From: Utricularia gibba
Lineage: Eukaryota; Plantae; Magnoliophyta
Assembly: GCA_002189035.1 (NCBI GenBank)
Contig: NEEC01000009.1
Coordinates: forward strand, 3,286,001-3,350,000
Direction of reading: 5' to 3'
DNA length: 64,000 nt
Position 1 is the stretch's first letter. Every line of letters begins with the position of its first letter. The notes under the pieces were generated by a model. That model made no database searches. It saw only the letters and a program-made list of their open reading frames with translations, and was not told the DNA's origin. The translations under genes and the position numbers were made by a program. This document shows positions 1 to 60,203 of the stretch, in pieces.

Positions 1-2863
1 TGGGATGGAGGGGTTGAGTCCAAGCTCCTGAACACAAAAAAGGGAGGGCCGGAGCAGATTCAGGGATTGCTCGCTGGTTCAAGGAAATGGCACATATAAG
101 AATTTCTTACGGAGGCTAATTCTTCTATCATGATGGTCCGGTTGCCTTCCTTCTCGAAGAATTCGTAGCCGCAGCGGGCGTGCTGCTCCCATCTCTCCAG
201 AGCTTCCAACTGGTAGACACTTAATGCAGCAGCACAGAATTCATCAAGATCCATCCTCGTATACTGGAGTGCTGTCAGCTGTTGTTGAGGAGCACCAAGG
301 TGAGAAACTACATACAACGGAAAAGGGGAGGTATAGGATTGTATTAAGGATCGCACCGAAGCGAGGAAATCAAAGATCCGAGATTCACTCATGGCATCCG
401 TGGCATTTCTCTTCAATGCCTGAGGTCATAGTGAAAGTAAGTTGCGATTTCTAAGATGGGAAAAACCGAAACAAGACGCCAAGAGAACGTACTGCCTTGA
501 TGGTTTCTAAGCTTATGAAACCATTCATGTTTGGTTCAAGAAGAGAAAATTGCTGCCTGAGGTAGAAGAGTTCGTCTTCAGTCAGAGTTCGGGATAAAGC
601 CTGTATCAATGAGCCATAACAGAAAGTTTAGTGCGTGTTTGCTAACAGCTGCCCTCAGGGAAGCTCCTGCAAACCACAGAAACAGAATAAGATGAACGAT
701 AAGCACCCGCAGAGCAGCTTTACGCAGGGGAGAAGAACGCATATAAGCTTTCATAAGCCTAAGGACCAATATATCCAATGGCACCTCAACATTGTGGGTG
801 TTTCTGATCCATGGATGACCTGAATCAGAAACATTCCTGTAAGCGGTGGCAACTTGATTCTGGAGGCAGACTGATAATCTAAAGAAAGGGGGAACACTAA
901 CACATGGCTTGAGCTGCAGAGAGCCTTTTCCTGGGATCCTTGTTTAACATCCGCTTCACAAAATCTCTGGACTCTGGAGACAGCGTAGGCCAGGGGGGTT
1001 CCTCATATGTCGGTTCAGCTTTAACCACAGAACGAAAGATGCCAGATTCGGTTCGAGCCCAAAAAGGCCGGCTTCCACACAGCAATATATAGGCTATCAC
1101 CCCGATACTCCAGACGTCGGCCTCTGTATTATAGGCCCTGTGCAACACTTCAGGTGCAACATAGTAGGCGCTTCCAACAATATCATTCAGCCTTTCATCT
1201 GCAAAAAATTTGAACTATAGTCATTCAGCAGCTAACTACCCGTGAAAATCATAATTTAGACAATGAAAAACTGTAATTCCTCACCTGGTCGAACAAAATC
1301 TGATAACCCGAAATCTATAGCCTTCAACGTTGAGGTCTCTTCTTTGGATGTGAACAAGAAGTTCTGTTAGAGGAGCAAGCAATACATAAGACAGGATTTG
1401 GTAAATTGTACATCATAAACTTGGGTTACAACTCTAACCTCAGGTTTAAGGTCACGGTGAACCACTCCTTGAAGGTGGCAGAATGAAACGACATTCAGTA
1501 TCTGTACCATCACAGTCTTTGCATCATCTTCTGAATACTTTCCACCCCTGTAACCAACGAACTTGTTTTAGATGCTGCAACAAACAAAAGATTTCATTGC
1601 TTCGTCAGCAAATCGTTCAAACATAAAAAAACCTTGAAAGGATTCGGTCCAAGAGTTCGCCTCCTTCACATAACCTGAAATTTTAACATGCAATCAACAA
1701 CTGCTTAGAGAGGATAATCGCATCATAAAGTTCCGAAATTTGAGACCAGATTGTCATGAAAATTATCTGAAAATTAAGAAACCTTCGAACTGGTCATCAA
1801 AATAGAGAACAGCCTAACCCAAGGAGAGGTAAAATTTCATGATCATTGATGAAACAGGTTTTCAATACATTGGGTCACAATATTTCGCTTTGGAACTTCC
1901 AAGTGCACTTTTGAAAATCCCAGACTTACTCCATAACTATGTAGACATTGTCATTATCTTCAAATGAATGGTAAAACTGCACTAGGTTGGTATGTCCTGT
2001 CAAGGCCCTGAGTATCTTCACCTCCTTTCTTACATCTTCAATGGCTATAGCAGTGGTCATCTGAAAAACAATATCACATTGAAACCATGAAGAAAGAAAA
2101 GCAAAATGCCTGTGTATCCAAAACTAAGCAAATCTGTAGAAGGCAAGGTAACAATAAAGGAGCACTGGGATAAACAAGGAAATTAAGAAAAAAAAAACTG
2201 AATTCCTTGTTCATAAAGATAGATCAGATCTCGAAACGCACAAAGGAGGGAAGCAAACCACAACACATCAAAAGAAGAACTCTCACCTTCGCTTTTGGTA
2301 TGACCTTAACTGCAACTTCTTGCCCCTGAGATCCCCTTTCTTGAACTTTGCCCGACAAGTGTAACCAAAGTGCCCTCTCCCAACCTCCTCCCCTACTTCA
2401 AACTTGCTGTAAAAATTCTTGGAATACCCAAAATTCCTATCCAGACCCGCACCTCCAACCAGATTCTTACTCTCAGGCAAAGACGTTTCATTAGGCTTCA
2501 CAGAGCCCTGCCGCCGCGCAAGCACAGCCTTGATGTGCTTCGCCGGAGACGGCGGAGGAAACGGTCGCTTGAAGAGACTTCTCGGTGTGGCGTTTGGCCC
2601 GGCGACTTCTTAGAGAAGAGATAATGAGCGGGGCTGGGACTGTAAAATGGGAAAAAGGGAGACCTTTTACCCACTTCGTGATCCACTTCTTCACTCTTCT
2701 TCCGCTCCTCAAAATCACTAGACCGCTTGACATTGTCAATACTTTCCTTGCCCTGGCCAGGATCACACCGTTCCTGGGAGGCACGAATCCCTGGTTTGAT
2801 CTGCAGAGGCGAACCAAAGTTGGGTTCTGCAGGCACTTTGGGTTTAGAAATGCACACCCCCAT
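1..2863 (-). CDS. CRK: CDPK-related kinase (CRK), multi-exon, 3' end runs off the left edge
   Basis: MGVCISKP myristoylation/palmitoylation start; [34 protein letters not shown]; [11 protein letters not shown]; [31 protein letters not shown]; degenerate EF-hand tail [19 protein letters not shown]; GT-AG exons. Two apparent 1-nt losses in C/G runs (2598-2600, 2323-2326) break exon 1. Confidence 0.95.
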
Positions 2864-4306
2864 TTCCGGCTCGCACCAAAGAACTCAACTTTTATCGACC
2901 CAACAACGCTGGAGCTTTCTTTCTCCAGCCCCGAATCGGATCCCGTCTTCAGCTTTCAAAACGGCATAGTCTGGAATCTTTAAAAGTTTTGAATGCACAT
3001 TTTTTAACGGAACCCCGCTTTGAATATTTTTTGCTGCGAGTCAATGCCTGAGAGGGAAGAGAAGAAGGAAAAAGGGTACACAGAGAAGAAGCTCCCAAAG
3101 CAGCAGATAAAAAAGTAATCGATGATACCTGCTGCTGCTTTAGTTAAGAAGGCACAGTACACACACGTATACATTACTTTCATTTCAAGATCAGATCACA
3201 AGAGGTGACCAATCAGAGATAGCCCCAACCTACCCTCAAATCTTATGGCCACAATTCAAATAACCCACGTCCTATCACGCGAGTTAAGCCTCCCCAATAT
3301 CCATACCACCAATGAACAGACATGAGACGGGAGTGGATCAAGGAACATAAATGAATCCACGACTAAAATAAAACCCCACACACGAGAACCAAATAACAGA
3401 GGAGTTTCAACTCACCTTGTCTAGCTTCCAAATAGCAGAGATCCCATTAATTTGCAGGTGGCCATTTTGGAAGTTCTCCTCTCACCAACCAGTTTTACTT
3501 TCACAGCAAGGAAAGGGGTTCCATTTTCCCAAGTGTATTTATTTCTTTTACCGCAAAAGAACAAGAAGTTGTGGCGTTGGTCATCAATTCCTGTATTTAC
3601 TTGTTCTCAGATGGGATGCTAATCCGATCCGCCAAAGCGCGTGGGGAGGTCCATTTGAATTAAAATAAATAATAAAATAAAAGCGTTATGTTATTTCGAA
3701 TTTAAGGAGCCGAATGTGATACCATTTAATGGGCAGCAGCGTTTTGGGAGATGGATTGGACGAGCATTCAATTTGCCCTGGGCCCCACCGCATTCACTCC
3801 CCAGCTTCCCTTGCAAGAAAAAAATAATAATAATAAAAAGGCTGTCATGACATCATCATCTTTCTTATTTTCTTTTATTATTTCCCCTTCATAATTAATT
3901 ATCCAAACCAGCAGTACTTGATGACGTGGCAGCCGGCAAGGTGGGCAATGCACCCGATTCGTGATGATTAGTTAGAAGTATTTCACTTCAACTTGTTCTC
4001 CCGGGGCAGCCATAAAACGGTGCGGTGCGGTTTGCTGCTCCACAGTGGACATAGGCACCGGGGTCTTTAAGGCGCAGTTGCATTGCCCATTCCTTCTTTC
4101 AACATAGAGAGGAGTCAGACAACGGATGAAGTGGTTGGTAGAAGAGTTCAAATATGTGTGCATCATTCCTACAATTGCCTCCACAACATACAAGCATCTC
4201 ATCTTCCAACTGACAGGTAAAAGCTTCAGACGAATGGCATGTATGTATGAATGATGTAAGATAACGACATCCCGGAGTAAGTTCACCTGGAGGAGTGGAG
4301 CGGAGG

Positions 4307-7258
4307 TCAGTCATCACCAGCATTCTCAGAGGATGGAGTTCCGGCAAGCCAACCCCAAACACCACCTGGGTTCTGCCTTTGCCTTGCCATCACTGCTGCA
4401 GCTTGTTCGGAAGCAGTCTTTTGTCGCTGTAGGATTTCAAGTTCCTTCTGTAGCGTCTCCGTTGTCTGTAGCTTCTGCCTCAGCTCTGCGGCGTCCACCT
4501 GTTATTCCAAGGATAAAGTGTTACTCTCCTAATCTTTCAGATCCTTGGCACAAACAGTTAATGCTTCCAGTTGTGGTAATGAATACCAAGAATAATCACT
4601 AGCTCTGTAATCAATCTAACATGAAGACACATACAGAGAGCCTTAGAGGATGAGAATGAAGATCTTGATGAGCCGTTGTCAAATATGCACTCAGCACGTT
4701 TTGAGTTTCAAGCACGGTACTTACCTCGAGTTTGAAACATCTGGACTGTTCAGCAACAAGCTGGCTTCCTACAGATTGCAATACCTGAAAAGATTTAGTA
4801 GCTTGACTCATTCACCATTGTGGGAGGTTTCTCTTCAATCAGAAACCTCCACATGGCAATAACACAAATATACAGAAAGATCTAAAAGACAACTCGCCTT
4901 GTACATTTCCGCACTGCAAGAGTCGGCTTCTTTCACACAGAAGGCGGGATGCCCCTACAAAGTAAGAGAAAATGACAAACAAGATTGATAGATCTTCCCC
5001 AGCTAGATGAAAAAATGCGAACCAAAGGTTCCATCCCTCACATTACAAAGCACCCCCGACCAATGAAATTATCAACAAAGGAAATACTGAAAACCAAATT
5101 CATTACAAATTCTCAGTTAGTCACTGAATCCCAAAGAACTACTCTAATCCAATCTGTAAATCTAAAATCCAGTTCTTGCAACAAGCATCACACTCATTTT
5201 CTTTTCTTTTCTTTTCTTTTTTAATCAAGAACCAGATCAGATAAAAATGTCACTGGGTAACATGATTTACCAGGCAAAGGGATTACAAGCGGCAACATTA
5301 TCCCCGTGAAGCTTCTGTAGGATCCTTTGAATGTCCAGCTGCTGAAAGAAGTTTATATCCATCCCATGGTATCTACAAAATGAGCTGTAAAATTTACGGC
5401 TGAATCAACTGCTTAAAAAAAATATATGACCAATATTCAACAATGATAACCATTCAATGATAATATTGGTTCACTTTTGTTTAGACAAGCATTCATGACT
5501 GCATGTTGCATAAACCTAGTATCTATTTAGAAATGGTACTGTACAACTTGGCCTCTGTTTACAATGCGAGCTATTTAGATGTTACTCACCAATGAATGAC
5601 ACCAGCACAAGGAGAAATCGTGCTCCCTTTCCTTGAGTTAGGTTCAACTTTGAAGCAAGTCCACATCTTCATATCCAAAACCTAATATAAGCGCAAAAAA
5701 ACCATAGGTTTGAATTTCCAAATATAAAAACAATGGCACATAGCAGAGAGAATGCAGAAAAAAGCGATAGGGGTATTTAGGGCATAACCACTCACACAGA
5801 GATAAAGTTCCTGATGCTCCAACAACTGAATTCAGATGCTTTACATTTGCATAAAATCTATTGCAATACTTCAGTACATAGCTTTTTGAAAATAGATAAC
5901 TAGTGGTCCCTTACCTGGAGATCATTAAGATAACGTCCATTGTGAATGACACCAAATATGTACATTTTATTTCCAAGAACTGCTGCTCCATGCTGTCAAG
6001 GGCCAAGTTAACTTATATACTAATGAAGATTATACGAGTGTCAAAACGTCCTCCCTCACTCAAAATACATGACAAGTTAAATGCAAAGCATGAATCAGAT
6101 ACCTCATATCTAGCCTTCGGAAAATTTCCAGAGATCGGAGGAGCCACCCATTTGTCATATAAGTTAATGATGGTAGTAACTTCTGATAATACAACTTTAT
6201 CTTGAGCTTCAGATAAGATAAGATTTTCTGTTTGAACGTTCTTAGCTTCTGAGTCAATGATATTGTAGGAAATAAAGCAATTTCACTCTGTAATGGGATT
6301 AATTTCTGTCTAAAAAAACTTGCTTCCTGCATGTTTCTACCAAATTTTCTGTCATTCAAGGCATAGCAATCTGAATTAGCTATGAGCACATGGCATTCAG
6401 AAGAAAACAATAACGTCAATAGGCTCAGCTGCATAAATCATGTCAGATTTACTAAAAAAAAAGTAAATGTAGTATGCAAACCTCGTCCACTTGCTTTGCT
6501 CAATGGGACTCCAACCTCTTGGCTTTGGAATATTGCAAGGCCCTATGGTAGCCTTAAACCACCAAAAACAACCTCATTATTAATGCGCAAATTGAACTCA
6601 TCCTGGAAAATTTTCTCGTCCCTTACTCCAGACAAAAAAACCCCACTTCTAAGGCATAAATGTTCAGGTTCTCGTCAAAAAAAGCCTCATATTTCACGTT
6701 GAAATACTCGTATTCAAATTCTTGATCACAAAAGATACAGAATTCCCGAAGCTTTGATCAGAAAACCTTCAGAATGTATTTCATGGTAAAACATGATAAC
6801 ATCGAAAATAAGCCAATTCTGCAAAACAAGAAGCCAAACATAATCATAAGTACGTAACAGAGACCCCGAACGGACACCAGGATTTAAAAGTGAAGACCCG
6901 GTGTGGCTAGAAAAGCAGAAAGACTTATAATCCTTCCAGGAATGACATACCTGTTCTGGAAGAAATTTTAAGACCAAGAGAAATGGACTGATTTCCCATG
7001 AAGATCAAATTTGGAACGTCGCGTAAATGCATGAACCTAAAGCTCTGATCAATATGAGCACGACGCAAAACTGAAGAACTGATGAAACTAACACCTGCTG
7101 ATAGAGAGCATAAAGGAGCAACGTGGAGTCATTTGAGAACTTGGAGGTGACGTCTCTAGACGCAGATGTGGGAGATCCCCAAATCCAGCGTACGCCGCCG
7201 CTGCATAGAGCTTATCAGGATACGAGAGACCAGCCAATGCCCTCGCCGCCGCTTCCAT
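4307..7258 (-). pseudogene. ACBP4: Kelch-type acyl-CoA-binding protein 4/5 homolog with large internal deletions and a premature stop
   Basis: Exon 1 MEAAARALAGLSYPDKLYAAAAYAGF..LLLYALYQQ (7258-7095); exon 2 ATIGPCNIPKPRGWSPIEQSKWT; KARYE|HGAAVLGNKMYIFG; C-terminal AEQSRCFKLE..ELRQKLQTTETLQKELEILQRQK..GGVWGWLAG. The second half of the ACB domain and most kelch repeats are absent, and splicing exon 2 to the exon at 6428 gives AGC TGA. Confidence 0.75.
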
Positions 7259-7627: not shown

Positions 7628-10600
7628 ATGAACGCTGATGATGCTGACAACGCCGACACGCAGCCGCCGCTCGATCGGAAAGATGGAGACGTTAAAGAAG
7701 AGTTGTTTGAACCTTCATCGAGTGTCTCTGTTTCCCGTACTGGTGCTGATGCTGTCGGTCGTAGCGAGGAAGTGTCTAGGGTTTCACCTGCGGGTGCATA
7801 TGGGGCAGTTGATGCGATGATTTCTGATGCAGTGGAAGGCTCGATAGGGTTGAAGCAACCAAAGGAATATAGCGTAATGGGGGAGGCGGGTGAAGGAGCT
7901 TTCGAGAGTCCGCCGATCGTCTCTCGCTACGCCTCTAATGATGGTGATGAAGATGTACCGAATTTTCATCCGAAAGCTGAGGATAAGAAATTAGTTGGGG
8001 ATTATGATTCGATGCTTTTTGAATTTGATCGATTTGCATACAAGGGTGGCGGTGAGGCTGTTGGATATGGGTATGAGATCGGTGATATGGTATGGGGTAA
8101 AGTGAAGTCCCATCCATGGTGGCCTGGACAAATCTTAAACGAGTTACTTGCTTCTCCTGCGGTAAGGAGAACTAAGCGTGAAGGCTTTGTGCTGGTTGCG
8201 TTTTTCGGGGACAGTAGTTACGGCTGGTTTGATCCAGCAGAGTTGATTCCATTTGTAGAGAGTTTTATGGAGAAGTCTCGGCAGTCCTCTTCTGGAGCTT
8301 TTGTAACAGCAGTGGAGGAGGCTGTGGATGAGTTGTCGAGGAGGAGGAGCCTGGGAATGGCTTGCCGCTGTAGAAATGAGTTTAATTTTTGGCCCTTTAG
8401 CGTCAAGGGTTATTTTACGGTTTATGCAGGGGGTTATGAACCTGGTATTTATTCTTTGAGTCAGATTAACAGGGCAAGGGAGGAGTTCCGACCGAAGGAA
8501 ATGCTGTCATTTGTCCAACGAATTGCGTTGAGACCAAAGACTAGCAACAATCTAACCATTGAGTTCTTTAAAAACAAGGCCACAGTTCTAGCTTGCAGAA
8601 AAGCTTTGTATGAAGAATTTGATGACACATATGCACAAGCCTTCGGAACTACACCTGAACGACCTGCTAGGCCTACTGCTCCAGTGGCTCCGGATCCATC
8701 TGGAGGTATCCCATATTCCTGAGTGCATTTTTTTCTGCAGATCCCTGGGCCCTCTTATGAAATGGTTAAGCTGGCATTTATCTTTATTTGTCGGTTATTT
8801 CACTTTTGGACGCCTTAGGAAAAGCCAATCGTCCTCTATTTGAAATGAGCGTAAGCTCCTGTGGGATTTGTGGTGATATTTCGCTGAACTGGTGCATCTT
8901 CTTGCATGCTGATTTGCATTTCTTATGAGAATAGAGTCTACAATGGGGTGAATTTAGTTCTTGTTGTTTTTTTTTTCTGGAAGAAAGAATGCTGCATTTC
9001 TTAGTGGCCTTCTTACACCTAAATTTATGCAGTTTCTTTGAGTGGTCGGCTGGTACTTGCGGAAGACCTTGGAAGAGGGAGGCTCTCTTTGACGACGAGT
9101 CAAATGAAAGATGAATTGGAGAAAGAGCAATATTTGTTCCAAAGACGCGATGAACTAATTATCATGAAGGCCAAGAAAATTGCGCAGCCACTCTGGGTAG
9201 ATGCATCCAGCATATCTGGAACATCAAGTGATTCTGGCATGCGAGGTCGTATCCAACCAAGTTCTAATATGAGTGGCGCAAATGCTTTCTCTACTCATCT
9301 ACCAAGAGAGGGGACTCAAATTGCTTTCGCTGAAATCAGTGCTAGAAAACTTCTTGCAAGTGGAAAGCAAAATTTGAAGTTACTGAAGAAGAGTGATGTG
9401 GCAAAGAGTGATACACGTGCACTGTTAATTGATGAGAAGATGAAAAGAAAGGGAGAAGCAGGTTCTCATGGGCCATCTCCTGATCCTGGTGCCTCAAGAA
9501 TGTCACTGATCAAGAAAATGAGGAAGGAGTTGGGAGGTGCTGCAAATCGTGGTTATATGAAATCAGCTAAAAGCAGCAGTAGTACATCTGGGCAGCAAGC
9601 TCCACAGATTTTGCATGGTGGTCGAGTTAGTGGTTCTAATACTCAGGTTGACAGTCAGATGGGAAAACCGGAGCTCTTATCGCTTCTTCGAGACCTTCAT
9701 GCACTTGCAATTAATCCATTACATGAAATAGAGAGGTGCTGCCCAGCTACTTCTCGTCAGGTCTTCTTGAAATTCAGATCTCTCATCTATCAGAAGAGCT
9801 TGGTTTCGTCTCCTCCAGCTGCAAGAGAGACAACTGAACCTCACATGACTAATGCTGTACAGAATCCCGCTTACAGAAGCCATGAAAAATCATCAGTTAA
9901 GCTTGCCCGACCGTCGGTGAGGCCTGATGATGCAACTAGGGAGGGTAAGAAACGCATACTATCAGATCATGTGGACGTTATTAAGAAAAGGAAGGTTGAT
10001 GACTCGAAGGATGCTTATCCAAAGAAGCTTGCAGATTTGGGACGCGAAATCAAGAAGAAGATGATGAGTGACTCGAAGTCATCAGCGATGAAGATTCCCC
10101 ACAAGTCTGTTGTAGCTCAGCGGAGAGATCTGATGGAATTACCTCCAAAACCTCTGAAATCCAGTAAATCAGATTCTAGCAGAAGTGAGAAGCCGGCAAA
10201 AGTACGGCGTCGAACTGCACTGATGATGAAGTTTCCAAAAGGGGCTTCCCTTCCCTCTGGTGCAGAGCTGGCTGCAAAATTCGCTCGTTTTGGGCCACTG
10301 GAGTTCACAGCCACTCGGGTTTTCTGGCAAACAGAAACTTGTCGCCTGGTCTTTCAGCATAAGGTTGATGCTGAAGCTGCCCTGAAATTCGCTGCTTCGA
10401 GTGAAAACTTATTCGGGTACGAGAATGTATTTTGTCATCTCAAAGATGCAGCTACCGAGGGAGCAGAAACCAAGACGGCCAAGGTTCGGAAGGAAGATGC
10501 GCCGCCCAAGGACATTCCTGTGGAATCGAGATCAGCCGCTGTCCAGCCGACAGTACAAGTACAGCTCAAGTCGATCCTCAAGAAACAACCCAACGACGAG

Positions 10601-11285: not shown

Positions 11286-11296
11286 GGTTGGAGGGG

Positions 11297-11507
11297 CCTG
11301 TCGGCACACTGCACGACCCATCATCCAAGACCAGCCGAAGCTAGGTCACGGAACGATCCTCAACTGCAAGCCCGAAGCATATAAGTTCACAGACTCGGGA
11401 AGCCGTACACCACGCTCTGGTCACGCAGCCGCGTTTCATCATCCAGACTTCGTCTAAGGAGACGGATGTACGAGCCTATAGAACAGATCCTGTTCAAGTA
11501 AGGTCGT
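11297..11507 (-). ncRNA. U3: U3 snoRNA (plant Pol III type)
   Basis: The minus strand begins ACGACCTTACTTGAACAGGATCTGTTCTATAGGCTCGTAC (GAC box, boxes A'/A of plant U3). It also has box C' TGATGA, box B GAGCGTG, box C GAGGATCG and a terminal GACAGG, with an upstream USE+TATA and a downstream T-run. Confidence 0.95.
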
Positions 11508-52909: not shown

Positions 52910-54217
52910 TCAAGCCTTAACTGAGAAGATCTCTAAAAGAGAATACCAGGTTCCAGATACTCCAAGCAGAAGGCCAACTATAATGACCACTATATCAGCA
53001 ATGGCTTCTCTTAAGTTCATCTCCTGCTTGAATGCTAAATAGTGAAACAAAGCAGGCAAGACAAAGCCAAGAATACAGCAGGTGCTGCTTCCAACCAGAG
53101 ACAGGAAGTCGGCGAAACTAGGCACGAAAAGTGCAACAAAGACAGAGAACAATACTAGCGCCCATCTCAACAATAAGCAGTACCTCCCGAACCAAAACCT
53201 TCTCTCAAACACTTCATGAACTGGGTTCATCATTAATGGGAAGCTAATAAACAGATTGACGCAAAGGGCAAGCTGAATAAGAACACTCAACAACCCTTTC
53301 CCCATGTTGGCGGTGATTATGTCACTCGTGCTTTCACCATAGGCGAAGTACCCAAGTGCACCAAATCCACCAAACATGCAGGCAATGAACAGGATTGCCA
53401 AAGCCAATATCTTTCCATACTTGGACTTCTCTTTCATCTCTGCCTCCAAGGGTAAGGCCATCCCAATCCCTTCAAAGGAGTAAACAATCACACCTAATCC
53501 ATAGAAAAAAGAAGAGACAGTTCCAAATGCCTCTATCACAGGCATCTGCTTGAAGAATATGACCATATCCTCAACCATGACAACTCCCTTGGCACCAATA
53601 TCCAGAACATCAGCGATAATGCTCAAAGGGGCTAAAACTGTCAGTGAACGAATCGAATTCAAGCCCAATTGAAAGGGGAAACAACCCCAGATGTAAACAG
53701 CCTTTGCAGAAATCCCCCAAATTTCAGGGCTAGCACCAATCGACAAATTGACAGGTGAAGTAAAGAGATTGCTAAGGGTATTACCGATGAAAATAAGATA
53801 TCCCACGCAAAACCCAGTCTGGGAGAGCACAATCAAGATATCCACGGAAAATCTACCGACGGACCCACAGGAAGCGTAGCCCAGATCACCAAAAGAAGTG
53901 GGATTTGGGAACGAAGCAGTGGGGGAATCAGCAATCTTCCTACGGGTGTCAACTAGGAGCATCATCCCCCGATAGGTGAGAGCAGCGACGAAGAAAATCA
54001 TGACAAGACAGGTTAGCCACCCTGTTCGCATGAACGTGTACGGAAGGCCGAGAACCCCGGCACCGACGATCGCAAGAACGACATTTGCGAAGGTTTTGAG
54101 CCCAGAAGAGAGTCGTTGGTGTTTAGCGTTGCCGGAGAGCAAGGGAGTATACTCTTTTGGGATTGATCGCAGGGAGCCGGCGGATGATCCAGCTTCACTC
54201 CGTCTCCCCAAACCCAT
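52910..54217 (-). CDS. AVT3: Vacuolar amino acid transporter AVT3/ANT1-like, single exon
   Basis: TPLL motif; KTFANVVLAIVGAGVLGLPYTF; SFGDLG; VYSFEGIGMALPLE; FPLMMNPV; multiple hydrophobic TM segments. Confidence 0.92.
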   Translation of the reverse strand: MGLGRRSEAGSSAGSLRSIPKEYTPLLSGNAKHQRLSSGLKTFANVVLAIVGAGVLGLPYTFMRTGWLTCLVMIFFVAALTYRGMMLLVDTRRKIADSPTASFPNPTSFGDLGYASCGSVGRFSVDILIVLSQTGFCVGYLIFIGNTLSNLFTSPVNLSIGASPEIWGISAKAVYIWGCFPFQLGLNSIRSLTVLAPLSIIADVLDIGAKGVVMVEDMVIFFKQMPVIEAFGTVSSFFYGLGVIVYSFEGIGMALPLEAEMKEKSKYGKILALAILFIACMFGGFGALGYFAYGESTSDIITANMGKGLLSVLIQLALCVNLFISFPLMMNPVHEVFERRFWFGRYCLLLRWALVLFSVFVALFVPSFADFLSLVGSSTCCILGFVLPALFHYLAFKQEMNLREAIADIVVIIVGLLLGVSGTWYSLLEIFSVKA

Positions 54218-54858
54218 TATCCAGCACTGCAACCTGTAAACCCTGAAAACAAGGAGAAAGCAGGATCCCTCCTCGGGATAACCTCAAGCTGAGGAGCGCG
54301 CCGGGGGACCTGAACAGAGGTGAAGCCGCGTGGTGTCCGTGCGCGTTCTAACACAGAAATGGAGAGTGACAATTCTGATACGCCTATTATTCTCACGCTT
54401 ACCTTTCGCCAGCCAACCACCTCACCTTGTGCGTGACTGTGCCTGTGGGTCTACACTCGGACAATGCAAATCGCAAAGTAGGAGGGTGGGCCCCAGAAGA
54501 AAATCATTTCTTATTCTGCTCATTGGGCCGGGCCTCACGAAATGTATAGGAGGGGGAGCTCGGCCCAATCGACACTCATTCTCTCTTTTTTTCTTGTTTT
54601 TTAGGAGGTCCGTACAGTACACGCGGAAGAGGAAATTTCCAAAAAGCACACGCCAACACTGACTGAAATTTACAAAAACGCCCAAAACTTATCCACACCA
54701 CCACCCATTTATATTCTAGTTGTTGCTGAAGCCCACTGCCAACATGCCATTGTAAAAAAAAAAAAAAAAGAGGTTGCTGAAGCCAACAGTCGCCCCCGAC
54801 ATCAAACTAATTTCAGGCGGTCGCCATCGGAGAGTCCTCACCCTTATCCACATCACGA

Positions 54859-55503
54859 CTAAGCGCTCGAGCTGAAGCCAGACCCCCCGGCGACATCAAA
54901 CTGGGAAACGTAATTTCCGGCGGCCCTTCCGGACGCCGTCGGCGTTTTTGGGGGTTCATTCAGAAATGCCCAGTTGCTGTTTATCCACCTGAAAACATTT
55001 AAACACCCGCGCACACATGAACGGATCTTATGCTTTCTTCTTCTTGAATCTAGAAACTCAATAGATAATATACCAGCCGTTCTTTTGAAGAAGATCGAGG
55101 ATGTTGGCGTCAGCTTCAGCCACGTCGACACTCGTGTCCGCATCAGGCAGGATCCCCTGCGTAAAACAAAACGAAATCTCTTGAAATGACCAAAACAAGG
55201 AGTAACAGCATAGAGGATTTGGAGGTTGTTGCCTGCCTGAGGATCAGTTTCAGCCGCAAGAGGGGAAATGTCCTTGAGATGTTCCTCTTCTATCTGCTTC
55301 TTCACTTTCCAAAAGGCGTCAATTTCTTCCCTGGTCATCGACTTGCTCCTCTGCATCAACTTCTCTGACGGACACATCCGCAAAAGTTATAACACATCAT
55401 GTGCAGGCGACGGAAGGGTAATCAGTTTAAACAAAGGGTCAAAATACTAACCACGGTTGGGATCTGTAACAAGGGAGTACCACCCTGACATGAGAGAACC
55501 CAT
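54859..55503 (-). CDS. Small conserved plant protein of unknown function, 3 introns
   Basis: Spliced product MGSLMSGWYSLVTDPNR|EKLMQRSKSMTREEIDAFWKVKKQIEEEHL..DPQ|GILPD..KNGW|WINSNWAFLNEPP..NYVSQF matches a recalled family pattern (MGSLMAGW; EEI.AFW; W..SNWAFLNEP). Confidence 0.8.
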
Positions 55504-56116
55504 CTCACAGAATTCTTCTTCAGTCAGTTCCCTGTCGGTCCACTGAGAAATGGGAACAGAGATAAAGAACACCAGCTGCACAAGGATGGATGTATCTATA
55601 TGTATAGCCAGCTGGAGCGGATTAGGATTAGGGCGGGCGGTGAGTGGTTTAGTTGATTGGAGTAGACCCACAGAAAAGAAAAAAGCATCCATCATTAGAC
55701 TATAGGTTTGATTTGGGCGGAGGATATTTTTGAAATACAAAAGTAAAAACCAGATATTTTAGATGAATCCCTTCTTGATGGATAGAGATTGTTTTATGTA
55801 TAAAATAAGAATGGGGTAGCAGTGGATAGACACGCATTAGGAAGAACATGAGAGGAAGGGAAAGCGACGTAGAAGAAGCAAGCATATCCGCCACATAAGA
55901 GTTACATTTGAAACAACGAAATCTAATCTATCATTTACTTTTGATGCTCCTCCGCCTACTAACTAGACTACCACGCCCTTGTTTTTCTCCATCCGGGCCC
56001 TGCTCTGCCCATTCCACCAACGCAGCCTGCAAGGGAAAGAAAGCAACCACAACGCAACACATGAAATAAATCACGAATTAGCTTTTGTTGCTCCAGGTAG
56101 GCATCCATCCTAAGAA

Positions 56117-56196
56117 GGGGTCCAGGCGGAATCGAACCGCCATCCCCCAACGCATTCCTGCGATGGAGTGCTCTTCCAGTACGAGCTCATGAACCC
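56117..56196 (-). ncRNA. tRNA-like structure (80 nt) without a canonical anticodon loop
   Basis: Acceptor GGGTTCA/TGGACCC; D arm GCTC-GTACTGGAA-GAGC; extended arm CTCCA-T-CGCA-GGAA-TGCG-T-TGGGG; T arm GGCGG-TTCGATT-CCGCC; discriminator C. Confidence 0.85.
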
Positions 56197-56691
56197 ATCA
56201 TTGACCGCCGCATAGAATTAACCCCAACTACTAAAATAATCTACGATTCCTAATCGCAAATGAACCCCAATTAATAGTCAACAACCCTCTTGCGGGAAAT
56301 AAAACTAAAATAAAACACCCATTTAATTAAAGTCTCGATGGAACATTAAACGCGTTCTTAAAGCCACGACAAAACTACAACGCTAGTAAACGTGAAAAAA
56401 AGCCTGAACACGCAAACTTTTTGCAAACCGAGATAAAACAATCCTATCGATAAATTTGACTTTAAGACAAGGAAACAAACCCGTTCCCCACGATCACATG
56501 TGCAATTGTATTCACATGGATGTTGCACACAAGCGCATTCACTACGCTCCAGAACAAGTAGACCACCCGTGAACGGCGTCCACGCTCCAATATGCTCCAC
56601 AAATGCAGATTATTCTCTATCTTGCCGTAGATCAAGCAGTTGAATGAACTTATTATACTAATCATTCAACCTTGAGATGCCTCCTAACGCC

Positions 56692-56705
56692 GGGGGGGGG
56701 GGGGG
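56692..56705 (+). repeat. G14 homopolymer (a G12 run also lies at 47804-47815)
   Basis: Read directly; the lengths may be unreliable given the homopolymer error pattern. Confidence 0.8.
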
Positions 56706-57329
56706 AAGGACTAGCCGTACTGTTGGGCATTCCAAGATCCGCAAGTCAAGTCGCAGCACTCGGAGATGGTTGCAACAGCTTGTCAGTGACACTCCCGCCG
56801 CCAAGCTCCCGTTGCCTTGAATCCGGTCTCAACCATACAACTCATAGGTGGAATTTCTATTACAACCCAACGATGACTGGAATGTTTACAAGCTCACATT
56901 CCAAGACACTATTGGCATTACCCGGAAAAAAAGACAAGATATCATGTGTCCGAAACAGGCATCAGAATTATCAAGGAAGATACTAAAATGAATTAGGTCG
57001 AATTGCTTTCCAGTGGCAGACACAGTTATTACCTTGTAACTTTGATCCCAATAGGGATTTCAGATATTTTTTCTCGCGACAAATGAATTATAAACCAAAT
57101 AGAGTGCACATTGAGTACCTTTATGGGATGATGCTTCGGATAGGTGAACAGCGGAGATTCACTGATGACATGGTGGTGAACTGCAAATGATGGAATGTTT
57201 GAATGGATTGTGCAATTCCTATTTTCTGTAAATAGGAATTGGCACAAGCATCCAAGAACAAACAATCGATCGCAATGAACGTTTGATGTGCGAGTGCAGG
57301 TAATGCGAGGAACCAGACGCGACGCAGCA

Positions 57330-57439
57330 GAGGGGAGAGCCGGGCTGAAACCCCGTACCATCTCCCCTCAAAACCAAAAAAGAGGTACTTTTATTAGGTT
57401 TCGACCTGCCATGCGAGCGCACCCATCATGGCAAAGGTC
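57330..57439 (-). ncRNA. Double-hairpin element resembling the CR20/GUT15 conserved core
   Basis: Hairpin 1 GACCTTTGCCATGATGGGTGCGCTCGCATGGCAGGTC (57439-57403); A/T-rich linker; hairpin 2 GAGGGGAGA..CGGG-GTTTCAG-CCCG..TCTCCCCTC (57369-57330) with a perfect 9-bp basal stem. Confidence 0.7.
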
Positions 57440-58697
57440 ACTCTGACATCTTCGCTACCCACCAAGCACAACCAACAACCGTCACATTTTCCCTTACCCC
57501 CACCTCCCCCAATCGACAGATATGAAGAATAACGCAACAGCTAACATATCAAAAGTTACTTCCCTTTAGATTCTTCACCCGAAAGAGGGGGTGCTGCGGA
57601 TGGGAGTCTCGGAGCAGCGAATTCACCAAAACTTCGAAAGGAACATCAGATCAAGCGCTCGGAGGGATATGTACGGCCACCGTCGCAGCGGCTCATCTTC
57701 TGCGAATTACAGAAAATAAATGTAACCATGACAAGTACACATGCCTGGGCAATTAACCAACAAGAAGGGTAACCAAGCGATGCAAATCAAACAGAAAAGT
57801 TAGACAACCGCCACACGCTTATAGATCTACAAAGGAAAAGAGGCAGATCTGTGAAGGAAACCTCTGTTAACCGATGAGAGCCGCGTGATCCATCACCACG
57901 ACGGCGTTCCCGAGGCGGTGGAACGTATTCCGCCGCCACTTATCCTCATACGATGAGGAATAAGCTTCTGAACAAACAGATGAAAAACCATACTCAAAAC
58001 GTAGATCTCCGGGAGATCCATCACGAGATGGGGAAGAGAATCGCAGAAGCGCCGGCGGAAAGAGTAGATCTGGAATTGCAGAGTTGGGAGGAGAGGGCAG
58101 TTTTTTCTTCCTAAAGGTCCGTGAGAAGACATGGCTTTAAGCACCTTCGCGATGTGATCCTACGGTCAGAAAACAATCGGCCCAGAAGATCTAACGGCCA
58201 TCGTGTTTGCGGATCTGTGACGCGAGTATTTTGCGGAAAAATCGACGGTTGCTAGGAGTCGTGAAAAGATTCTAGAAGTTCCTACCGCCGCCAAAACTCC
58301 CTCACCTATGCCTCTATGTATGTATGTATATTGAGCGAACAGTGGAGGCCCATTATAGGGCTGGTCAACCCAAGAGAAAAGCAAGGGCCTGGCCCATTCC
58401 ATGGTGCACACACTACATGTCCACCTGGACTGCCTACTCTTGCACACCAGAGGAAACTTCCCGGGTTGCGGCTCCGCTTGTGCATCCCACGCAATCCACC
58501 CACTAATACACCGCCACGTATGCTTGGCGATCGCGGCACCCACCCGGTGTCCGTCTGACCGGAAACATTCTATAAATTGGTTGGTTCGCAAACAGAGCTT
58601 ACGCAGAACGACTTCCTTCCTGCAACAACTCTCATAGAAAGCTCGCGGCTTACGGTAGATTTTACTTCTTCTTCTTCATTACTCGTTGGATTCTCCG

Positions 58698-59320
58698 ATG
58701 TGTTCTCCGCCGCCTCATTGTTTGGATGAACAACTCATCGAAGAGAGCTTCACCGAATCCTCTCTTCCAAGCGATGCGTCATTCGATTACGGGTCCTATC
58801 AGTTCCCTCCCCTGACTCCTAAAGGTCTGGTCCGTCTCTCTCTCTTTCCCACTCTGCTTTTGAAAAACAGAGAGCCTGTTAAGGATGTGTGCTCCGATTT
58901 TTGTTTGTTGTAGAAGAAATGGATGATGCGTACTGGGGAAGCGGCCAAGATTACTTCCCAAACGTATACTACGCAAGAGAGACGGCAGATTGGATGACGC
59001 AAGAAAAGAATCCGACGGTAAATCCTGGTCCCTTATGGAGAATGATGTGCAGATGATGAGTGTGTGGTTGTCTACAGGTGGCTCCAGATGGAGAGGAGGA
59101 GGAGGATTTGTTCCTTGACGGCGACTACCTGGAGCTGAATGATCTTGAGGATCATCATGGCTCCGGCAACCAGATGAGCGGTTACACGTATAGGTACTCG
59201 CAGGAGGGCGTGGAGTCTGCTAATGATATCCTGATGTGGGAGCGAGGGCAGTGCATTTCTATTTACGCGGGTTTGGATTTAGCTGATCTGAGCCGAAGTG
59301 CTTCTGAAAATGGTGAGTAA
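58698..59320 (+). other. Spliced acidic ORF resembling a NAC transcription-factor C-terminal region without a NAC domain (gene fragment or small gene)
   Basis: Three in-frame exons with GT-AG borders: MCSPPPHC..FPPLTPK|EEMDDAYW..EKNPT|VAPDGEEEEDLFLDGDYLELNDL. No NAC domain is visible upstream. Confidence 0.35.
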
Positions 59321-60203
59321 GAAGAAGCAGCAGCAGGGCTGCGCTGGCGACAACATGATTTACTTTGCAAAGGAACTGGTAACAAGGGTAGGTAGGTGAG
59401 GCGATCCCAGCCAAAGGCAGGCAGTAGTAGAGGAGACAGGATGCCGTTACCTTACCTTATCTTACTATGGTGGGTCTGGGTCTGGGAGCATGCCCGGCTG
59501 GGCTGTTGCCTCCCCTCAATTTGCATGATTTGAACACAAAATTGTAAAGGAAAGAAGAGGGGAGGGAGTGCGGACGGCGGCATGGTTCAGTGCGCCACCA
59601 CATTATTAGCAACATAATAATCCATTCCACGCACTCTCTTACAGTATCTATGGATAGATGGATGGATGTTTTTATTTCAATGAGGAAAACGGCAACAAGA
59701 TTCTTGGACTTGGACAGGTGTCGAGGGCAGTCCCGTAATCGTGTTCTCTCTCTCCTTAACAATGAATAAACAAACGAGAGTCTATTTTTTCTTTTTTCTT
59801 TTTTTTTTATGTGGGTCGGTTGCAACGCGCAGTTTCCCCCCGTAGGCAAGGAAGGCTAGGCCAGGCCAGTCCGCACACGAAAGCCGGACGGGAGACACCC
59901 AATTCTCACTCTTCGCACCACTCGCCCCCGGCCCCAAATCCAATTCGCACCAACGCTCTTCCCCACACCCCTTGATTCGCTCGCTACACCTGCCCAACAC
60001 TGGGGACACGCCCACGTCTGGGGAAGCCACTCACTAATTCCCTGATTCTTTCAGCTGGATTTCTTCAACTAGCTGGCTCGCCATCCTCTGGGTATTGTGT
60101 AATGCGGGAGTTCTCGCCTCCTTCCAAGGCTAGGACCAAATGGGGGGGAGCCTGCCGACGATTTGATGGAAACGGGACTATTCGCGCTTAACGCCCTCGT
60201 TTC

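Follow-up and report, generated by a model that had tools for sequence, protein, structure and literature searches.

A tRNA-like element with an extended anticodon arm in Utricularia gibba, very probably a module of a GUT15/CR20-family long non-coding RNA

In vertebrates, mascRNA of MALAT1 and its MEN-beta counterpart are non-decoding, tRNA-shaped modules of RNA polymerase II long non-coding RNAs (lncRNAs), on which RNase P, RNase Z and the CCA-adding enzyme act. The tRNA-like element of the Arabidopsis GUT15 gene (At2g18440) has stems and loops of standard size and a conserved T loop, with three bases instead of two where the acceptor stem meets the D stem, an A box lengthened by 2 nt and no canonical anticodon stem-loop (Plewka et al. 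2018, PMC6152437). It is located in the spliced final intron, 674 nt long, slows the splicing of this intron and is not independently transcribed by RNA polymerase III (PMC6152437). In CR20-1 the element is exonic (exon 2), is 12 nt short and was undetected as a small RNA in Arabidopsis tRNA-seq (PMC6152437). Reviews describe the lncRNA family as conserved across angiosperms and do not mention the tRNA-like element elsewhere. In a search of mostly non-subscription literature, Plewka et al. (2018) was the only description of the element found, and it covers Arabidopsis alone; an earlier report is possible.

The stretch of Utricularia gibba DNA analysed here, 64 kb in length and referred to as the window, contains an element that can be compared with these:

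56196-56117, minus strand: tRNA-like element (ARAGORN, minimum-free-energy fold, covariance model, arm-by-arm comparison and pair counts)
56145-56168, minus strand: extended 'anticodon' arm of this element, with a 5-bp outer stem, a 1x1 internal loop, a 4-bp inner stem and a GGAA cap

In the minimum-free-energy fold, the acceptor stem of 7 bp is followed by three unpaired nucleotides at the acceptor/D junction (TGA, versus TAA in Arabidopsis) and by a D stem of 4 bp, which closes a 9-nt D loop containing GG. The T arm is perfect, with a stem of 5 bp and the loop TTCGATT, and all 21 stem pairs of the element are standard pairs. The fold has an energy of -36.9 kcal/mol and represents 65% of the ensemble (z = -3.07); its stability was equalled by 1 of 200 shuffled sequences. 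In the extended arm, the 14 nt in the position of the loop form a 4-bp hairpin capped by GGAA (56151-56162), leaving neither a usable anticodon loop nor the canonical anticodon arm of a 5-bp stem and a 7-nt loop. An RNA released from this site could not decode, because its anticodon arm is a closed, extended hairpin. An earlier note, made from the sequence alone, had proposed this cloverleaf with these coordinates and on this strand, with a GGAA-capped anticodon arm unable to decode; the cloverleaf is borne out by ARAGORN and the fold together (acceptor stem, GG in the D loop, T arm), and the arm matches the minimum-free-energy fold. The length of the element is 80 nt in the window and 81 nt in RNA contigs: contigs from two studies contain an extra C behind 56143 (plus strand), which lengthens the G-run of the RNA by one. 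The true length may therefore be 81 nt, with a variable loop of 4 nt.

ARAGORN, which had been suggested as a check, calls the locus, and calls it as the sole tRNA-type gene in the 64 kb, but the label that it gives, tRNA-Leu(CAG), is not credible, involving a C-C mismatch, a G at position 33 and an unpaired variable region of 9 nt. We reject this label because the alternative fold, described above, dominates the ensemble and because the outer stem of that fold covaries. An intron-containing tRNA was also considered and rejected; the insert would be 7 nt long, position 33 would be a C and there is no plausible anticodon context.

The marks of a canonical nuclear tRNA gene, namely a match to the Rfam model, a 7-nt loop with U33 and an RNA polymerase III terminator, are all lacking. 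The Rfam tRNA model RF00005 has no match over the element at the gathering score or at E<=10, nor was any other meaningful family found there, and the roughly 140 nt that follow the element contain no run of four T. This absence is consistent with an origin other than from RNA polymerase III, and so is the irregular A box; both had already been noticed in the earlier reading. The B-box-like T arm and the tRNA call by ARAGORN would fit an autonomous transcription unit of RNA polymerase III, or a SINE head derived from a tRNA, but either is extremely improbable. There is a single copy in the 64-kb window, where the D-arm pattern, the T-arm pattern and the covariance model each match one site only; no A-rich tail or flanking direct repeat is seen at the element; RNA contigs pass through it without the breaks typical of a dispersed repeat; and the Arabidopsis homologue is not transcribed alone by RNA polymerase III (PMC6152437). 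The dispersed copies with A-tails that the earlier note had named as the sign of a SINE head are thus not observed in the 64 kb.

Upstream of the tRNA-like element on the same strand lies a second structured region, by which the host can be recognised:

57439-57330, minus strand: double hairpin of the GUT15/CR20 family (BLAST, alignment, consensus fold)
57403-57439, minus strand: hairpin 1 of the double hairpin (consensus fold)
57330-57369, minus strand: hairpin 2 of the double hairpin (consensus fold)

Similarity to Arabidopsis continues beyond the double hairpin to about 57286 (minus strand). BLAST matches 57439-57286 to GUT15 (locus L113, positions 2681-2858) with E 2e-12 and to CR20-1 (locus L002, positions 612-769) with E 3e-16. 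The alignment of the window with the Arabidopsis loci contains long invariant runs, and the domain is near-invariant in the family; the consensus fold calculated from four sequences (the window, L113, L002 and the contaminant contig L126, see below) comprises 29 pairs, and compensatory changes are seen in four of these. Strand and order of the double hairpin and the tRNA-like element are identical in the window and in all the two-module loci compared. The distance between the two modules is 1231 nt in the window, versus 1140, 1176, 1647 and 1555 nt in the relatives. The 75-aa open reading frame of the Arabidopsis host is not retained; it is cut to 11 codons in the window, where no long conserved reading frame is present, and this shrinkage fits selection on RNA structure and not on a peptide. 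A protein search with the 67-aa reading frame over the hairpin domain found nothing. Scanning for the hairpin core gave no match in viral contigs and, in genome contigs, one plant contaminant contig that ends before any tRNA-like element. This contig, L126 (NZ_JANCLT010000044.1, 1157 bp), has low coverage in the Ectobacillus ponti assembly and carries the GUT15/CR20 double hairpin, in which each of the two hairpins shows compensatory replacement of A-U by G-C.

The host lncRNA contains a further strong and nearly perfect hairpin (57192-57268, minus strand), some 60 nt downstream of the double hairpin. It has a folding energy of -33 kcal/mol over 91 nt (z = -6.0), and none of 200 shuffled sequences was as stable. 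Its only matches, to animal miRNA models, are weak and below threshold; the hairpin may give rise to small RNAs or form another structured module.

The two Arabidopsis loci were the useful result of a metagenome pattern scan that was too loose, giving 120 matches, almost all of them to ordinary bacterial tRNAs. The identity of both was checked against the primers of Plewka et al. 2018 (PMC6152437). L113 is GUT15: all published primers map to it, the gene starts at 2237, the tRNA-like element is at 3825-3905 and intron 4 (3446-4119) has exactly the published 674 nt. L002 is CR20-1, with its tRNA-like element at 1792-1860 and 12 nt missing, as published. Further loci were brought in by phmmer with the Arabidopsis 75-aa reading frame, which overlaps the hairpin domain. 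Chromosome 2 of Rosa chinensis (L130, 5073-9368) contains two tandem GUT15/CR20-type genes 2.7 kb apart, both with the hairpin domain and each with a tRNA-like element of its own (6720-6801 and 9287-9368). ARAGORN labels one of these as 'tRNA-Lys(ttt)', and an annotated 121-aa 'hypothetical protein' overlaps the non-coding hairpin domain at the same locus. The transcript contig L131 has a tRNA-like element at 1541-1616, cut by the end of the contig. In Erythroxylum novogranatense (L129), the hairpin domain is present and no tRNA-like element was found within 5.6 kb downstream, even with the model filters off. The tRNA-like module is not universal in the family and can be absent or far away, as at this Erythroxylum locus.

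A covariance model (R2) was built from four rosid copies only, leaving out the window. Within the window it matches the tRNA-like element and nothing else, over the full length, with 46.6 bits and E 3e-12, and the alignment has no gap at the acceptor/D junction or in the D loop. With R2, the nuclear tRNA-Ala(AGC) of Paulownia (L123) reaches 52.8 bits, above the element, but needs deletions at three places: 1 nt in the junction, 1 nt in the D loop and, in the anticodon loop, 6 nt. As tRNA-Ala outscores the window, the model score alone cannot separate the family from tRNA-Ala; the membership of the window element follows from the insertions in the junction and D loop and from the host context, which it shares with the family. 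Its identity to the rosid copies is mostly in parts common to all tRNAs. The family itself looks to be derived from a tRNA-Ala gene in which the junction and the D loop each gained one nucleotide and the anticodon loop about six, judging from this one comparator and from shared strings of sequence: the rosid members have in common with the Paulownia tRNA-Ala the strings spanning D stem and anticodon stem, and anticodon stem and variable loop. The family is distinguished from nuclear tRNA-Ala(AGC) by the extra nucleotides in these three places, and the window and Arabidopsis copies are without the G3:U70 pair and without an anticodon loop.

The similarity of the window element to that of GUT15 is mainly one of architecture. 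Both have a 7-bp acceptor stem, a 3-nt junction, a GCUC/GAGC D stem, a 9-nt D loop, a 5-bp outer anticodon stem with an oversized loop, a 5-bp T stem and a UUCGAWU loop; both are 80-81 nt long, and both belong to the same host family, with the double hairpin about 1.1-1.2 kb upstream on the same strand. In contrast, the sequence of the acceptor stem is wholly different. Compared with the rosid copies, including Arabidopsis, 7 of the 21 pairs are changed on both sides and none is broken. Arm by arm, the double changes relative to Arabidopsis affect four pairs of the acceptor stem (1, 3, 6 and 7), two of the anticodon stem (4 and 5) and one of the T stem (3), and two more pairs are changed on one side, to G-U. 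The elements also differ in the variable loop (3-4 nt in the window, 5 nt in Arabidopsis) and in the discriminator base, C in the window and G in Arabidopsis. When the six true members are aligned by fitting to the model, 94.3% of the cells are paired, versus 27-54% when the partners are slid; this alignment contains seven doubly changed pairs, a number reached in none of 500 shuffles, nearly all of them stemming from the window lineage and thus representing few independent events. These pair counts are taken from the arm-by-arm parse and the model-fitted alignment of the true members, since MAFFT alignments shift the 3' anticodon strand of the window by two columns.

In the asterid copy one third of the base pairs are new, yet no stem has been lost, which argues that the cloverleaf itself is under selection. 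An inert relic, that is, a functionless tRNA-Ala pseudogene caught in a transcript, would have no decoding capacity, would fail the Rfam tRNA model and would let its anticodon-arm sequence drift between lineages, all of which is the case. We nevertheless regard it as very improbable: seven pairs differ from the rosids on both sides and still no stem pair is broken, and Brassicaceae, Rosaceae and a Lamiales-type plant, with two paralogues per genome, have all retained the odd insertions.

The anticodon arm is conserved in part. Its outer stem is kept in the relatives, with two compensatory pairs, and its inner hairpin is specific to the lineage; the earlier note had suggested a search for compensatory changes in the extended arm. 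The GGAA-capped extension is likewise present in the window but not family-wide: the loops of Arabidopsis GUT15, of both Rosa copies and of L131 are 13 nt long, differ in sequence and are partly able to extend the stem, and CR20-1 has a 12-nt deletion that leaves a mini-hairpin. The stable GGAA-capped hairpin distinguishes the window from GUT15, and its arm is the most stable version compared. With CR20-1 the window shares the family, the order of the modules and the location of the tRNA-like element in sequence retained in the RNA; it differs in that the arm shortened by 12 nt in CR20-1 is of full length, and even reinforced. The earlier note had left it undecided whether the element was orthologous or merely analogous to that of GUT15. 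The double hairpin, the order and spacing of the modules, the 3-nt junction, the enlarged D loop and A box and the non-canonical anticodon arm show homology, and we are nearly certain that the element is a homologue of the GUT15/CR20 tRNA-like element. The resemblance to mascRNA of MALAT1 and to MEN-beta of vertebrates is one of mechanism only, with no sequence relationship.

RNA contigs of four runs (X2, X9, X10 and X11), mapped on 54000-59500, define the host transcript:

58093-55830, minus strand: host transcription unit, about 2.26 kb (RNA contigs X2, X9, X10, X11)
57861-57700, minus strand: intron 1 of the host, 162 nt, GT..AG (joint 57699/57862 in X2, X9 and X10)
56665-55830, minus strand: low-abundance 3' portion carrying the tRNA-like element (unspliced single contig)
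56082-56027, minus strand: branch-like CTAAT, pyrimidine tract and CAG (sequence only; no joint at 56027)

The host is spliced and abundantly transcribed, and a precursor RNA containing the tRNA-like element is expressed. The assembled RNA over the element, from libraries of mRNA type, represents this unprocessed precursor. In the flanks the depth is 0 (58232-58599) and 12-14 (55656-55839), which identifies the host signal as RNA and not as DNA carry-over. The joint 57699/57862 is the only canonical spliced joint of the host in the RNA contigs. The depth of the 3' portion is about one sixth to one eighth of that over 56707-57699: 216 (record 18, 55830-56665) versus 940-1240 in X2, and 518 (record 23, 55835-56819) versus 1361-4126 or more in X9.

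The earlier note had placed the element in an intron, upstream of a branch-like CTAAT, a polypyrimidine tract and a CAG acceptor at 56027. These signals are present in the sequence, but no use of them is seen: X2 record 18 and X9 record 23, contigs of two studies, run through the tRNA-like element and 56027 and show no joint there. Were the last 197 nt an exon joined at the abundance of the body, record 18 could not have a mean depth of 216, so the intronic location is unsupported; contigs drop rare variants, and a minor spliced isoform could have escaped them. This is a difference from GUT15, where the element is intronic, while in the window no splicing is seen around it. The copy of CR20-1 is also exonic, hence an intronic location does not define the family.

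The step in depth is at about 56665-56707, some 500 nt upstream of the tRNA-like element, and cleavage at the element does not account for it; the contig depths are flat means, from which ends cannot be mapped. In MALAT1, the module is located beside a triple-helix element at the mature 3' end, which is itself produced by cleavage of the module, in contrast to the distant depth step of the window. A C-run of about 15 at 56690-56705 varies in length between runs, 6 nt of it being missing in X9, and the 6-8-fold drop in depth occurs across it.

Taken together, the tRNA-like element is very probably a module of a GUT15/CR20-family lncRNA, the precursor of which may be processed as in Arabidopsis. 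Transposing the Arabidopsis pathway (PMC6152437) to the window, RNA polymerase II would make the host transcript, the 'elbow' of acceptor and T arm would be recognised by PRORP-type RNase P and tRNase Z, the CCA-adding enzyme would then act on the released end, and a stable RNA of about 80 nt would be set free. By this analogy, excision of the element and addition of CCA in this species are somewhat favoured over their absence.

The fold may instead serve in cis, as a processing or splicing signal, either a splice brake or a cleavage site setting the level of the long isoform, with the small RNA as a by-product. This overlaps with the lncRNA-module explanation and is not exclusive of it, differing solely in the site of the selected function; we consider it a live alternative, albeit a rather unlikely one. 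It fits with the sequence around the element not being spliced out and with the portion carrying the element being 6-8 times rarer than the body. RNase P cleavage does not, however, explain a drop in depth at 56665-56707, so far upstream of the 5' end of the element, and the full D arm and the T loop are kept, which is beyond the needs of a cleavage signal; for the CCA-adding enzyme, minihelices suffice (PMC6152437).

With the element as a module of the lncRNA, the known Arabidopsis system is extended to a distant lineage: a double hairpin followed by a tRNA-like element occurs also in Rosaceae and in a Lamiales-type asterid. New aspects are the conservation of the fold between rosids and asterids, the likely origin from tRNA-Ala and, in this lineage, the exonic or 3'-extension context. 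Variation is seen in the sequence of the acceptor, in the anticodon arm, in the intron context and in the short reading frame of the host; the elbow, the 3-nt junction and the geometry of the stems are kept. This division can guide mutational tests and a family-wide covariance search. Tentatively, and with the odds against it in our judgement, the module could be an ancient derivative of tRNA-Ala, at least as old as the common ancestor of rosids and asterids, in which the L-shaped fold and not the sequence is selected. In the Lamiales-type lineage it would have left the intron for an unspliced 3' extension, where tRNA enzymes would cut the transcript into parts, as in MALAT1, and so set free a reinforced, tetraloop-capped tRNA mimic acting in trans.

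One contig of X2 joins 57439-57330 directly to 56199-56150 and then diverges. The diverging end contains a second T arm, whose loop is TTCGTTT, and resembles Arabidopsis and Rosa in its 3' anticodon strand and its variable loop. This contig indicates that the genome expresses at least one paralogue in which the double hairpin lies beside a second tRNA-like element. In X9 and X11, contigs with loose ends at 57330 and 57439 suggest this paralogue again or a third one.

Other genes were located around the host and elsewhere in the window:

52910-54232, minus strand: AVT3-type vacuolar amino acid transporter (PF01490), intronless, 75% identical to Sesamum and Paulownia proteins
54754-55660, minus strand: gene for a small protein of about 130 aa, with three GT..AG introns (54987-55071, 55156-55235, 55365-55451)
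58694-59500, plus strand: divergent spliced gene with GT..AG joints 58822/58912 and 59016/59077, at low depth and in X9 only
11295-11507, minus strand: plant U3 snoRNA gene (Rfam Plant_U3, 110.5 bits, E 2e-28, full length)

The identity of the AVT3-type protein to those of Sesamum and Paulownia puts the window in or close to Lamiales, in a plant with a compact genome. Using the first two of these genes as anchors, no tRNA-like element was found near the AVT3 orthologues of Sesamum (L121) and Erythranthe (L122), or near the orthologues of the adjacent small-protein gene in Paulownia, Salvia and Cucurbita (L123-L125). The protein of about 130 aa belongs to an uncharacterised family without a Pfam domain, present from Sphagnum and Amborella to eudicots, and its gene starts only about 200 nt downstream of the 3' end of the lncRNA. 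On the other side, the divergent gene starts about 600 nt from the 5' end of the lncRNA.
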